Shown here: piece by piece, positions 1 to 5,780 of the stretch
How the letters are laid out: each line of letters opens with the position of its first letter
Position numbering within the stretch: position 1 is the first letter of the stretch
Source of the DNA: Amoebophrya sp. A120
Lineage: Eukaryota; Protista; Dinoflagellata
DNA: 5,780 nt
Assembly (NCBI GenBank): GCA_905178155.1
Contig: CAJINV010000053.1
Location: 10,894-16,673, forward strand
Direction: 5' to 3'
Made by a program: the position numbers and the translations under genes
The notes under the pieces: generated by a model
What the model saw: the letters and a program-made list of their open reading frames with translations, nothing else
Database searches by the model: none
What the model was told of the DNA's origin: nothing

Positions 1-249
1 CCCCTCGGTAAAAACGTATTAGAATCGGTTACGTACAGAAATTATTTCATCGTGCAAAACACACAAGAAGAGAAAGAGAGAGCAAGAAGCCGAAAGAGTT
101 TCTTCACAACATTTCAAGAACGTGAACAATGTCGAACACTCTGCAGGATGTATTTTTAGCCCCGCTAAATACTACTTGAGTCATACCCGAAATGGTAATT
201 TGTTCATGAGGTTGATAGTGTTCTCACGATGATCAGCCCTGTGCCAACA
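1..249 (+). repeat. 5' LTR (truncated by 8 bp at the window start)
   Basis: Matches 5085-5333 at 248/249 positions by manual comparison (C91 vs A5175); ends in GTGCCAACA at 241-249. Confidence 0.97.
146..159 (+). promoter_or_regulatory. Putative self-primer / predicted 5' end of the genomic RNA (U3-R boundary)
   Basis: GGATGTATTTTTAG can pair with 252-265 (13 Watson-Crick pairs plus 1 G-U). The transcription start here is inferred by analogy with Tf1, not observed. Confidence 0.6.
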
Positions 250-251
250 AT

Positions 252-265
252 CTAAAAATACATTC
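252..265 (+). promoter_or_regulatory. Non-tRNA primer-binding site (complementary to the element's own LTR sequence 146-159)
   Basis: Lies 2 nt after the LTR-terminal CA, the canonical PBS position, but has no TGG start. CTAAAAATACAT (252-263) is the exact reverse complement of ATGTATTTTTAG (148-159). The PBS function is inferred. Confidence 0.75.
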
Positions 266-536
266 CTCGACCTCAAAAATGTCACTTTTCCGTTTTTTAT
301 TTCCCAACTACGAAATTAAGTTTATCCGTCGGATTCGAGACAATAACAATTATCATACATTTTCCCGTGGTTTTCGAGTAGTAAAAGCTAAGAAATTGCG
401 ATTTGAAATTCTTCTCAACATCTATACTCCAAGACGTAAGCTGTAATTAATAACAAAGCGTAAAAGCCCGCAAATGCAGCATTGACGACCACTCATATCT
501 ACTTTTTGATTTAAACACGATTGTGAATCTCAAATC

Positions 537-1328
537 ATGGACTCTCCATCGCGATCCAGTCAGGCCGGTCACAGTGAAGAACTGAGTACCTCTTCCGGTC
601 TGCACAAGTCCCCCGTCAGCTCCTTCTACGGAAACCAGGACGGTTATCGCGACTACCGGTTCGGCTTGCGCGCGTACCTTCGGGGCAGGCACTTCCTGGA
701 ATACGTGGACGGCAAGAAAACTCCGACCAGCGACGTGAACAGCGAAATTTTCACGATCATCGCCTGCACGCTCCGCAGTGAGGCCATTACAGTGGTTTCC
801 TCAGTTCCCGAAGGTGACGGAGTTGCTGCGTACAAAGCGCTCGAGAATCGCTACGACGCTCCGCGGGTGAGCCGCAAGATTCACTTGCTCCGCACGTTGC
901 TCGGGTTGAAGTGCATCAGCGTGGCGGACGTTTCCAGCTTTATCTCCAAGAAAATTCAGGCGCTGGAGGAGTTGAAGCGGTTGAATTTATCGGCCGAAGA
1001 AGTCGCGTTGATCGGGATTTTGGATCAGCTTCCCCCGGAACTCTCCACCACGGTGGAAGCGTTGATCGCGCGGGAAAATCTGACATTGACGCACCTCTGC
1101 GACTTGATCACGGAGGCGAGTGAGGCGATTTTACGGCGTCAGTCGGAGCATAATCCGACCGCGTTGGCAGGCAAGGGAAACGGAAAGGATCACGATTATT
1201 GGTATTACCGCCCCCGTTCCAAAGGAAAAGGAAAAGGCAAAGGAAAAGGTAAAGGCGAAAAAGGAAAGGGAAAAGGAAAAGGCAAGAAGGGCAAGGCTGC
1301 GGTCGCCGAACTTGCCGAGGCGCTGTAA
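537..1328 (+). CDS. gag: Gag (copia-type capsid protein, Retrotran_gag_2/UBN2-like) with a C-terminal Gly-Lys basic tail
   Basis: 263-aa ORF positioned between the 5' LTR and pol. Copia Gag-like segments include YRFGLRAYLRGRHFLEYVDG, DGVAAYKALENRY and ILDQLPPELSTTVEAL. The ATG is in ATCATGG context. There is no CCHC knuckle. Confidence 0.88.
   Translation: MDSPSRSSQAGHSEELSTSSGLHKSPVSSFYGNQDGYRDYRFGLRAYLRGRHFLEYVDGKKTPTSDVNSEIFTIIACTLRSEAITVVSSVPEGDGVAAYKALENRYDAPRVSRKIHLLRTLLGLKCISVADVSSFISKKIQALEELKRLNLSAEEVALIGILDQLPPELSTTVEALIARENLTLTHLCDLITEASEAILRRQSEHNPTALAGKGNGKDHDYWYYRPRSKGKGKGKGKGKGEKGKGKGKGKKGKAAVAELAEAL
1221..1295 (+). repeat. Imperfect AAAGGN hexamer tandem repeat encoding (KG)n
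   Basis: AAAGGA AAAGGA AAAGGC AAAGGA AAAGGT AAAGGC ... is an almost pure purine tract translating as KGKGKGKGKGKGEKGKGKGKGKKGK. Confidence 0.9.
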
Positions 1329-1470
1329 ATCGAAGACGAAAACTCCTGTTTTGACGTTTTGATCGACGAAAATCAAGAACCTAGGACCGAAAACCGACGA
1401 ACAGTTTTATCCACGAATAATGTTTTGAACCGTGTAAGAAAATCACAACCGAAGAAATACATACCGGAAA

Positions 1471-4400
1471 TTGATCGAAATTTACCAGAAAAACAGAAGA
1501 ACGAGAAACCATCGGAGTACTATCGTGATTGAGTTCAAATCACGACTAGTAGCCAGTCAGAGGACTTTTACGGCCCCAAGGGTATACAAACCGGCTGCAG
1601 GTCGTAATTTGAAAACAAACCGCACTACATTCCGGAACACAGAAATCAAAGGAAAAACCGACAAAATGGGAAAGTACAAAATGAAGCAATTCAAGTGGCG
1701 AAGTGTGAAGAGCAGGAGACGAATCACCATGGTACCAGACTCCGGGTCCACGGACCACCTGGTGAATGATCTCTCCGTTGTCCAGGCCATTTCACCGTAT
1801 GAAAAAATTGTCAACTTCGGCGGTACCGAGCGGATAGCTGGCAAAGTTGTTCGACTCGTCCCGAATTCCCTTAACATTTCGACGGCGATTTTTTCGACGA
1901 GTTTCCGTTTCAACCTGTTATCACTCTACAAATTGACACTGATGAGGCTGTATACGTGTTTTTGGAGTATGAAAATCATCGACGACAAAGGCATGGAAAG
2001 GGCACCGATTTACCGAACCAGTAACATGTACCAGGTGGGAGTTTATTACGATTCCGAAAAACAAGAAGTAGCAGCGATTTCCCAGACCAGTAAAATGCTG
2101 CAACACCAGCGCAACATGCATTTTTTCGACACTACCTGCAGAATCAAGAACTGCCACGCCTGTCAGCAGAACAAGGGGCAGAAACCGTCGCACAACCGAC
2201 GACCACAAGAAAAAGGAATAACGGCGAAAAGGTTCAACGAGGTGGTCCATATCGACATCGTTGGACCGATTTCCCTGCGCTCGTTTAATAACCATCGCTA
2301 CCGTTGCAACCTGGTAGATGGTTACACAGGATGGGGGGAAAGCTACCCCCTGAAAAGCAAAACAGAGCCCTACCTCGCACTACGTCAGTGGGCTCAATCT
2401 CACGGACGACCCCAAGCGGTGCGATGCGACAACGGAGCCGAGTTTCAGGACCTGTTTGCAAAAGAGTGCAGAAGATACAACACCACCATTCGGCGGTCAG
2501 CTCCATACGAACCGGAGCAAAACGGTCTCGCTGAACGTTTCAACAGAACAATCGTCGATGCTATCAGGACGGTGGTAGCGGACACAGATCGGCGATTGTG
2601 GGCAGCAGCAGCGCGGGCCGTCTCGTTTGTCAGGAACCGACTGGCAAGAAGAGAGAAAGAGGCGCCCTACAAGATGCGTTTTCAGCGTAACGCTGCGACC
2701 AACTATTTTCGTCGTTTTGGATCACTATGCTACTACAAAGTGCACGTGAGGACGAAAATGGAGCCGAAGTACAGGATGGGTTGTTTTGTTGGATATGGGG
2801 AACAAAATTCCACGTACAGAGTAGCACACTACAGCAAGGACGGCGCGCTAGTAGTTTCCGAGTGCTACGCGGTCAAGTTTGATGAGTCCAAAACCATCAA
2901 AAATATGAACTCGATCAAGAACATCGACGACCTTGACCCGCTCGACTTACCGGGTGAGTTTACCACTTTGAATTTTGGTAACGGTGAGCAACGAAATGAA
3001 GAGAAAGCATCAAGTTCGAAAATAGCGGAGAACCCCCTCGCTAAGCAAGAAAAAGTCGCAACCGACCAGCAGAAAGCAAACGAGAAAAGTTCAAGCTCCA
3101 GCTCGTCAGCTAATCCAGACCCTGAACCGATAAAACCAGAGTTCTTCGATGGAATTAGCCGTAAACTCGTGCAGAATCCGAATGCTCGAATCGTACCGAA
3201 ACGACCCCCGCCCGTTCCTCAGCAGGGACAGCCACAAGTTCATCGGGTGATGGATGTTTTGAAGGCTATCGAGTATCGACAAAAACTTGAAAAGCAGCAG
3301 GTAAATCGCAAACGCGAGCCGGAACATTCGAAAGAAGACCTTCCGGAACCAAAGCGCCGAGCTGTTACCAGTTTTGTTGCTTGGGCACTTTTGACATCGG
3401 TGAAACCGAAGCAGGCAACTGGGACCGACTGGGATGCAGCCAGGCAAAAAGAACTCGACGGCTTAAACCGACTAAAAACTTGGGTCGAAGAACAGCCACC
3501 ACCGAGCACGCCCGTCATTCCCATAGTTTTGAACTACACGATCAAGGCGGATGGACGAAAGAAAGCCAGGGCGGTAGTGTTGGGCAATCTCGAACAAATC
3601 GACAACGAGAAAAACGATTTCGATTGCTACTCTCCGGTCGTTTCACACATCACAATCCGGACCATGCTCAAGAAAATGGCGACCGAAAATTTGTGTTGTT
3701 CGGGCTTCGATATCGAAAATGCATTCGTGACAGCGAACTTGACGAAGAGAGTTTATTGTCGACTACCACCTGAATGGGGCGGAAAAACCGTTCGTCTTAT
3801 CAAAGCACTTTACGGATTGCGATCAGCACCACGACACTACAGTGACCATTTTGCTGCTGAAATCGCGGCAATCGGGTGGACAAGAAGCGAGCACGATCCT
3901 GGCTTGTTTGTCAAGATCGTGGGACAAAGTAAGTACTTTTTGCTCGCGTATGTCGATGACGGTCTGATTTTAGGACCAGAACAAGCAAAATGCGACGAGC
4001 TACGAAGTGAAATTTTGAAGATATTCAAGGGCCGGCTTTTGGAAGTAACCAAGGAAAACAAAACCGAAAAATTTGAATATTTGGGCTTGACAATTACCCA
4101 CGACCGAGCCAATCACATCGTGCACGTGAGTCAGAAAAAGGCAACCGATCGGATTTTGAAAAACTTCAACATGGAAAAAGTAAAACCAGCAAAAACGCCA
4201 ATTGTCAAAAACATCGACCCCAACGGGACGCCGTTACAACCGAACCAAATCCCTTTCAACTACAGAGCGGTAGTGGGCCACTTGCAGTTTTTATCCTGTT
4301 TTTCACGACCCGACCTCACCTACAGCGTGAAAGAATTGAGTCGGCACCTGGAGGCGCCAAATCAGGAAGCAGTGGACGCAGCAATTCGAGTTTTTCAGTA

Positions 4401-5064: not shown

Positions 5065-5076
5065 GGGGGGGGAGAA
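5065..5076 (+). promoter_or_regulatory. Polypurine tract (plus-strand primer)
   Basis: GGGGGGGGAGAA immediately precedes the TG of the 3' LTR. Confidence 0.93.
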
Positions 5077-5333
5077 TGTTGGCACCCCTCGGTAAAAACG
5101 TATTAGAATCGGTTACGTACAGAAATTATTTCATCGTGCAAAACACACAAGAAGAGAAAGAGAGAGCAAGAAGCAGAAAGAGTTTCTTCACAACATTTCA
5201 AGAACGTGAACAATGTCGAACACTCTGCAGGATGTATTTTTAGCCCCGCTAAATACTACTTGAGTCATACCCGAAATGGTAATTTGTTCATGAGGTTGAT
5301 AGTGTTCTCACGATGATCAGCCCTGTGCCAACA
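5077..5333 (+). repeat. 3' LTR, 257 bp, with 9-bp terminal inverted repeats TGTTGGCAC/GTGCCAACA
   Basis: Begins with TG directly after the purine tract and ends with CA where identity with the 5' copy stops (CA|ATCT vs CA|TTTC). 5077-5085 is the reverse complement of 5325-5333. Confidence 0.97.
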
Positions 5334-5780
5334 TTTCGTGTCCTTGTGATATCAAATAAAGAACCTTTTCGAATGTTTTCGCGAGCCCATATTTCAAAAA
5401 ATATTTCCAGCGTTTTGCGAAGGATTCTCCAGTCGCGTCGAATATTCCTGACCTCTACCGCGTACGTTGTCGAACCTGCCAACACCGGCGCACAGCCACA
5501 AAGCTCCGCGAATCTTTGACGAGCTCGCCAAAAATAAAAAAACACGGCCGCCACGATTTCGACGATTAGCAGCACGCTTGTGCCTCGCGATCCGTCCGCC
5601 TGTTGAGTTTTACGGACATCAGCATCCGCCGGGTTCTCGCCGAAATCTTGCAACCTTGGACACCTGCAACCAAGATGCAGCCGGCCGGGAAATGTAAAAA
5701 ACGCAACAGCGCGAGCCATGCCCGACGGTAGGGATGGCCGACGCAAAAAACGAGGCAGCGAGCAAAACCACAGCCCTCCA

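Follow-up and report, generated by a model that had tools for sequence, protein, structure and literature searches.

A Ty1/copia retrotransposon of Amoebophrya sp. A120 that probably uses its own RNA 5' end to prime reverse transcription

To our knowledge, self-priming of reverse transcription has been demonstrated experimentally only in the Tf1/sushi branch of the Ty3/gypsy retrotransposons. In Tf1, the first 11 nt of the RNA act as the primer, with an RNase H cut between nucleotides 11 and 12 (PMC7175516). [quoted passage not shown] So far, self-priming in copia elements is a computational prediction made in one plant lineage. The fungal GalEa copia elements carry a Conserved Hairpin Site instead of a primer-binding site (PBS), with no LTR complement found (PMC5445492), and on the type of PBS used by dinoflagellate copia elements nothing was found in the literature searched. 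Here we analyse a stretch of 5,780 nt from Amoebophrya sp. A120 (the window, meaning the whole stretch), which contains a single full-length Ty1/copia LTR retrotransposon. Its sequence, taken together with that of other copia families, makes it likely that this is a recently inserted element in which, in the manner of Tf1, minus-strand DNA is started from the 5' end of the element's own transcript.

Architecture of the element and its LTR/PBS duplex

The features of the element are collected in Table 1. The full LTR measures 257 bp (TGTTGGCAC...GTGCCAACA); the first 8 nt of its 5' copy (TGTTGGCA) precede the window start, and the TG..CA ends were read on the 3' copy, the terminal CA of the 5' LTR lying at 248–249. 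Within the pol product, Pfam places rve (residues 254–348) ahead of RVT_2 (679–913), with SH3_retrovirus at 409–475, and rve ahead of RVT_2 gives the copia order that an earlier, sequence-only reading of this DNA had assigned to Pol. A comparison with 1.8 billion cluster representatives gave no match to this Pol above 40% identity, and its identity to the other copia families of the same genome, among them the one referred to below as family 2, is about 37%. The gag product is without a CCHC knuckle and has a basic KG-repeat tail at its C-terminus; a PF14223 search of the whole genome returned just 7 gag matches. The gag-pol junction (1200–1530) is odd, since the gag TAA at 1326–1328 is followed by 66 further open codons in frame and the pol frame is open only from about 1447. 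This arrangement would imply either readthrough together with a frameshift or a damaged copy, and the window copy may be non-autonomous.

Table 1. Features of the window and their coordinates
Feature	Position	Strand	Remarks
5' LTR	1-249	+	direct repeat 1-249 = 5085-5333, 1 mismatch (position 91)
CTGCAGG, putative U3/R boundary and initiator	141-147	+	CA at 144-145 directly before the primer
Putative self-primer GGAUGUAUUUUUAG	146-159, core 148-159	+	3' end G159 pairs with C252; co-varies with the PBS between families
Local hairpin TTTAGC-CCC-GCTAAA	155-169	+	overlaps the primer 3' half; read from the sequence
Remainder of R-U5, 90 nt	160-249	+	enclosed by the primer/PBS duplex; U5 stem-loop at about 199-250 (minimum-energy folds)
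Spacer AT between LTR and PBS	250-251	+	mirrors AA at 5075-5076
PBS CTAAAAATACATTC	252-265, core 252-263	+	complement of the element's own LTR, not of a tRNA
gag ORF, 263 aa	537-1328	+	weak PF14223 match, 26.5 bits; from the ORF list and translation
pol ORF, 1149 aa	1471-4920	+	protease (D-S-G, 1738-1746), integrase, RT, RNase H
Polypurine tract (PPT) GGGGGGGGAG	5065-5074	+	followed by the 2-nt spacer AA (5075-5076), then TG
3' LTR	5077-5333	+	257 bp; second copy of the primer core at 5232-5243

The genome searched comprises 115.5 Mb, and the window lies on contig C53. Its family has a sole other PBS-bearing copy, on contig C27 (L004:1476–2427), in which the LTR is 89% identical and both arms of the complementarity described below are unchanged; solo LTRs of the family show single changes within the primer 12-mer. 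The C27 copy has lost window positions 320–1850: behind its LTR and PBS, about 70 nt of leader are retained and pass directly into window position 1851 (95% identical). With gag and protease missing, this copy may be a non-autonomous derivative. A truncated LTR is found at C53:7738. The 3' flank of the window (5334–5780) is repeated with 99.3% identity behind a third LTR copy (C53:21861) and, with 95.8% identity and in reverse orientation, beside the C27 copy (L004:48–495; also L002). Judging from these repeats, the window element sits in duplicated or repetitive DNA.

[quoted passage not shown] The minimum-energy fold of 146–267 (-27.7 kcal/mol, z -2.46) has just these 14 pairs as its closing stem. 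Measured as in Neumann 2019, the window has a perfect complement of 12 nt (14 with the G-U pair) at an offset of 2, which lies within the range taken there to indicate self-priming. A chance inverted repeat without function might be considered, given the AT-rich sequence and the 14 imperfect inverted repeats of at least 12 nt in the window. Against this, the primer/PBS repeat is the sole perfect one, it is placed at the position of a PBS, and the primer 12-mer (allowing at most one mismatch) occurs three times in the window, in both LTRs on the plus strand and at the PBS on the minus strand, where 0.03 occurrences are expected. The sequence-only reading had pointed out both the 12-nt complement with its 14-bp extension and the AT spacer that mirrors the AA between the PPT and the TG; both are present, the former at the same coordinates and in agreement with the fold.

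The local hairpin at 155–169 has a counterpart at the same place in family 2 (ACTAGTA-CCCA-TACTAGT, L045:1714–1731), also with a C-rich loop. In the window family and in family 2, such a hairpin over the 3' half of the primer may constitute a competing conformation.

A conventional primer finds no obvious site in the element. The first 60 nt past the 5' LTR contain no TGG, the only match similar to the half-tRNA-iMet PBS GGTTATGGGCC (2 mismatches) sits in pol and is at chance level, ARAGORN detects no tRNA gene in the window, and Rfam gives no match. These results bear out the earlier observation that the element lacks both a TGG-type and a half-tRNA PBS. Across the genome, the 14-mer complementary to 250–263 is found at control frequency (26/32 versus 40/26 for controls), and the primer sequence contains a run of U (U5). 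Such a run acts as a Pol III terminator and would therefore disfavour a host nuclear tRNA as the primer; together with the control-frequency count, it makes a host primer unlikely. A host RNA complementary to the PBS, for which the sequence-only reading had proposed to search, was returned by none of the tRNA, half-tRNA and Rfam searches, and with the genome count at chance level, we reject explanations that invoke a tRNA, a half-tRNA or an Rfam RNA as the primer. Since five other copia families, described below, show a matched pair of the same kind in different letters, reverse transcription of the window element very probably starts independently of a host tRNA.

Alignment of six LTR copies bears on where the RNA begins. 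Identity among them is 0.46–0.55 over 113–142 and then 0.92–0.97 over 143–192, with the step at CTGCAGG. This pattern fits a U3/R boundary at about 141–146, and we infer the transcription start from the step in conservation at 141 and from the CA just before the primer. Three RNA-seq runs carrying the same species label contain no reads of any kind on window positions 1–750. The Logan contigs of run X1 end at 146 and resume at 175, the first of them having at position 91 the A of the 3' LTR. The ends of an RNA are not visible in contigs, and this interruption is probably a break in the assembly graph and no evidence of an RNA end.

We propose a mechanism in which transcription would start at about A145/G146 within CTGCAGG, and the first 14 nt of the RNA would fold back onto 252–265, holding the R-U5 region of about 90 nt in a panhandle. 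A nuclease (RNase H in the case of Tf1) would then cut after G159, and reverse transcriptase would extend the freed 3'-OH through T251 and A250 and then through U5-R to C160, giving strong-stop DNA. The 2-nt spacer AT (250–251) would be stripped by integrase during 3' processing. Later plus-strand synthesis would copy the primer and so rewrite the PBS in each replication cycle, and such rewriting would explain both a perfect match within families and free divergence between them.

Primer and PBS in six copia families

A metagenome scan with an RT-RH alignment provided 80 loci, 36 of which have LTR pairs. In six copia families, part of the LTR is complementary to the PBS. These are the window family, family 2 of the same genome, L063, L074, L089 and, as an outlier, L120. 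The perfect complement extends over 12 nt in the window, 17 nt in L063, 11 nt in L074 and 12 nt in L089, all at an offset of 2, and over 15 nt at an offset of 0 in L120. In family 2, the LTR contains ...CCCTGCAGGTTGCGACTAGTACCC..., and the LTR end (..CTAACA) is followed by AT and then by CTAGTCGCACC; the resulting duplex consists of 9 perfect pairs and, beyond a one-base bulge, 2 more, and it is preceded by the same CTGCAGG heptamer. The nearest relatives of the window, L016 and L064, lie outside this comparison of PBSs. Contigs of JACKZZ01 bear near-identical copies of families from the Amoebophrya genome, and the source of L074 is probably the same or a sibling organism.

If the LTR segment primes at the PBS, related families should show compensatory co-variation between the two, a test already put forward in the sequence-only reading. 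Anchored at the primer 3' end, with 11 positions per family, 65 of 66 positions are Watson-Crick paired across the six families; the sequence differs in each family, and most primer/PBS positions take 3–4 pair types. When partners are swapped between families, on average only 4.3 of the 11 positions pair, with a maximum of 6. The controls, 21 tRNA-iMet elements (TGGTATCAGAGC), have no LTR complement of at least 8 nt in the anchored scan; a 22nd such element, L079, was left out owing to an 8-nt match at an unrefined LTR boundary. Duplex z-scores range from -1.7 to +1.2 in the tRNA-iMet controls versus -2.3 to -8.5 in the six families. Recurrence in five other families and absence from the 21 controls effectively refute a chance inverted repeat, whose remaining probability we regard as negligible.

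When the RNA is folded from the start of the primer through the PBS, the duplex also closes the minimum-energy structure in five of the six families, the exception being family 2, in which the duplex is shorter and the fold favours local hairpins. L063, L074 and L089 have exactly two copies of the primer sequence, one in each LTR, and the PBS occurs once in these three and in L120; a single primer copy is seen in L120, the contig of which begins and ends within the LTR. Among copies of the window family and of family 2, the primer and PBS arms are conserved without co-variation inside a family, and the co-variation is one between families. Both arms of family 2 are conserved in copies with LTRs diverged to 78–93%, and one decayed copy carries uncompensated changes in the arms. 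The U5 region of family 2 (L045:1825–1857) contains, 12 nt upstream of the PBS, a sequence nearly identical to the primer, GTGCGTCTAG; local pairing between this sequence and the PBS is possible and is favoured over the long-range duplex in the minimum-energy fold.

Several further properties are common to the five families in which 2 nt separate LTR and PBS. These 2 nt read AT or TT and are mirrored by AA past the PPT; the PBS starts with CT, so that the primer ends in AG; and the primer 3' end lies 64–128 nt before the LTR end, with a CA 0–3 nt before the primer start. L120 has no spacer, and its primer ends in TA. L063, L074 and L089 have the copia order and, like family 2, possess 100% identical LTRs and perfect 5-bp target duplications. 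These two marks indicate that the four families moved recently and, therefore, that the design is replication-competent.

In a FastTree phylogeny of 96 RT-RH rows, drawn from survey and own-genome elements, the window, all families of its own genome, L063, L074 and L089 form one clade of 40 rows (support 98). All tRNA-iMet elements and the sampled plant-type copia elements fall into the other major clade. Scanning truncated contigs (L072, L107 and others) for inverted repeats gave no further cases of self-complementarity, and a scan of viral contigs found nothing. In a subclade formed by L098 (488–920) and the own-genome loci L038 and L040, no tRNA-type, self-type or DinoSL-anchored PBS is present directly past the LTR.

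A duplex of this kind need not be a primer. Long-range 5' structures exist in other retroelements, a general precedent that, along with the neat closure of the fold, favours a structural panhandle acting in packaging, dimerisation, translation control or strand transfer, with some other host RNA priming at the same or a nearby site. We consider this explanation quite unlikely. No alternative PBS lies beside the LTR, where TGG, the half-tRNA motif, Rfam matches and tRNA are all absent; a different host RNA would be required for every one of the six families and would also have to match that family's own LTR; and the duplex is always placed so that extension of the 3' end of the LTR arm copies the 2-nt spacer and then U5, the geometry of minus-strand strong-stop priming.

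The spliced leader and the 3' end of the primer

Priming by the RNA 5' end calls for a free 3'-OH at the end of the primer, and the AG at this position brings the splicing machinery of the host into consideration. The canonical DinoSL 21-mer has 51 exact copies in the genome, against 0 for the control, which identifies the host as a DinoSL-bearing dinoflagellate from its sequence, and the host trans-splices with DinoSL (PMC7789003). Proteins encoded by the window are represented in EukProt. Family 3 of the same genome, which is nested in the clade of the window, has no LTR complement (z +1.5). Its PBS, CTTGAGCC, located 2 nt (AT) past ..CTAACA, is instead exactly complementary to the 8 nt at the 3' end of DinoSL (GGCUCAAG), and this PBS is conserved in five copies (L051:949–969, L049, L050, L052 and L053). 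It is possible from this match that family 3 is a spliced-leader-primed retrotransposon; no description of spliced-leader priming of retrotransposons was found in the literature searched.

Two other observations concern the LTRs and the leader. Close to the 3' end of the family-3 LTR lies a hairpin of 8 bp (L051:915–937; also L050 and L053), with compensatory stem changes between copies. At least five of the copia families in this genome (L045:1644–1653; L020:3242–3251; L013, L034 and L039) contain the first 10 nt of DinoSL (CCGTAGCCAT), in the U3 of family 2 or directly past the pol stop; the window element lacks them.

The AG rule and the DinoSL-complementary PBS of family 3 together suggest a possible link between spliced-leader biology and priming. 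In one version of such a link, splicing itself would make the primer 3'-OH: the AG of the primer would serve as the acceptor site for trans-splicing of the spliced leader, and priming would be carried out by the 5' outron thus released or, in family 3, by the leader. Five of the six primers end in AG, L120 being the exception with TA, and so does the DinoSL that family 3 matches; the host is known to trans-splice with DinoSL (51 exact genomic copies; PMC7789003); the sequence UAUUUUUAG followed by C at 151–160 resembles a 3' splice site; and the family-3 PBS complements the last 8 nt of the leader. We nevertheless judge this version highly improbable, because a genome search for DinoSL joined at window position 160 found no such relic at C160, the other primers are without pyrimidine tracts, and the AG may reflect a preference of the nuclease or of the RT, PPT primers ending in G too. 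A broader proposal is that the primer of the clade is a detachable 5' leader ending in AG, mostly the first 11–17 nt of the element's own RNA and, in family 3, the DinoSL of the host. We offer this as a speculative suggestion that is on balance unlikely to hold; if true, it would mean that spliced-leader biology was co-opted for retrotransposon priming or was the seed of it. For the window element itself, the reading that we favour is the one set out above, namely cleavage after G159 and extension of the element's own RNA 5' end.

Relation to known priming systems

Self-priming, the central claim of the sequence-only reading, is the best-supported interpretation once six families are set against tRNA-primed controls. 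[quoted passage not shown] The window element is thus not the first copia element for which self-priming has been put forward. What it adds is a deep, previously undescribed copia clade, represented in a syndinian dinoflagellate parasite and in unidentified metagenomic contigs, that appears to have the same solution. The co-variation between families and the recently mobile copies strengthen the case that priming without a tRNA either has arisen repeatedly in LTR elements or is old among them, and the families supply a natural set of primer/PBS pairs on which experiments could draw. Such elements would be overlooked or ranked low by LTR annotation pipelines in which a tRNA PBS is obligatory.

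The closest described systems each share part of this design. (i) Half-tRNA-primed elements. Like Drosophila copia, Ty5 and Osser/Bianca, the window element has a PBS that does not start with TGG; unlike them, it has no GGTTATGGGCC-like PBS. L112, from the same survey, has a PBS of the half-tRNA type (GGTTATGAGCC) and no LTR complement. (ii) GalEa. Both are copia elements without a tRNA PBS, whereas the LTR complement is explicit in the window element. (iii) The plant TAR lineage. The window element shares with Houba and Osr-1 its membership of the copia superfamily and an LTR complement within the published limits; it differs in its host, a parasite of the dinoflagellate lineage, and in grouping apart from the plant-type copia elements sampled in the survey. 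(iv) Tf1 and Tf2 of Schizosaccharomyces pombe (Tf1/sushi, Ty3/gypsy). In contrast to the RT-RH-IN order of Tf1/sushi elements, IN precedes RT in the window element, and the RT is of the RVT_2 type; there is also a 2-nt spacer that Tf1 does not have, the primers are 11–17 nt long and end in AG in five of the six families, and the cleavage is here a prediction. As in Tf1 and Tf2, however, a tRNA PBS is missing and the RNA 5' end (about 11 nt in Tf1) would pair with a PBS past the LTR, and, as in Tf1, the duplex encloses R-U5 with a U5 stem-loop (PMC7175516).
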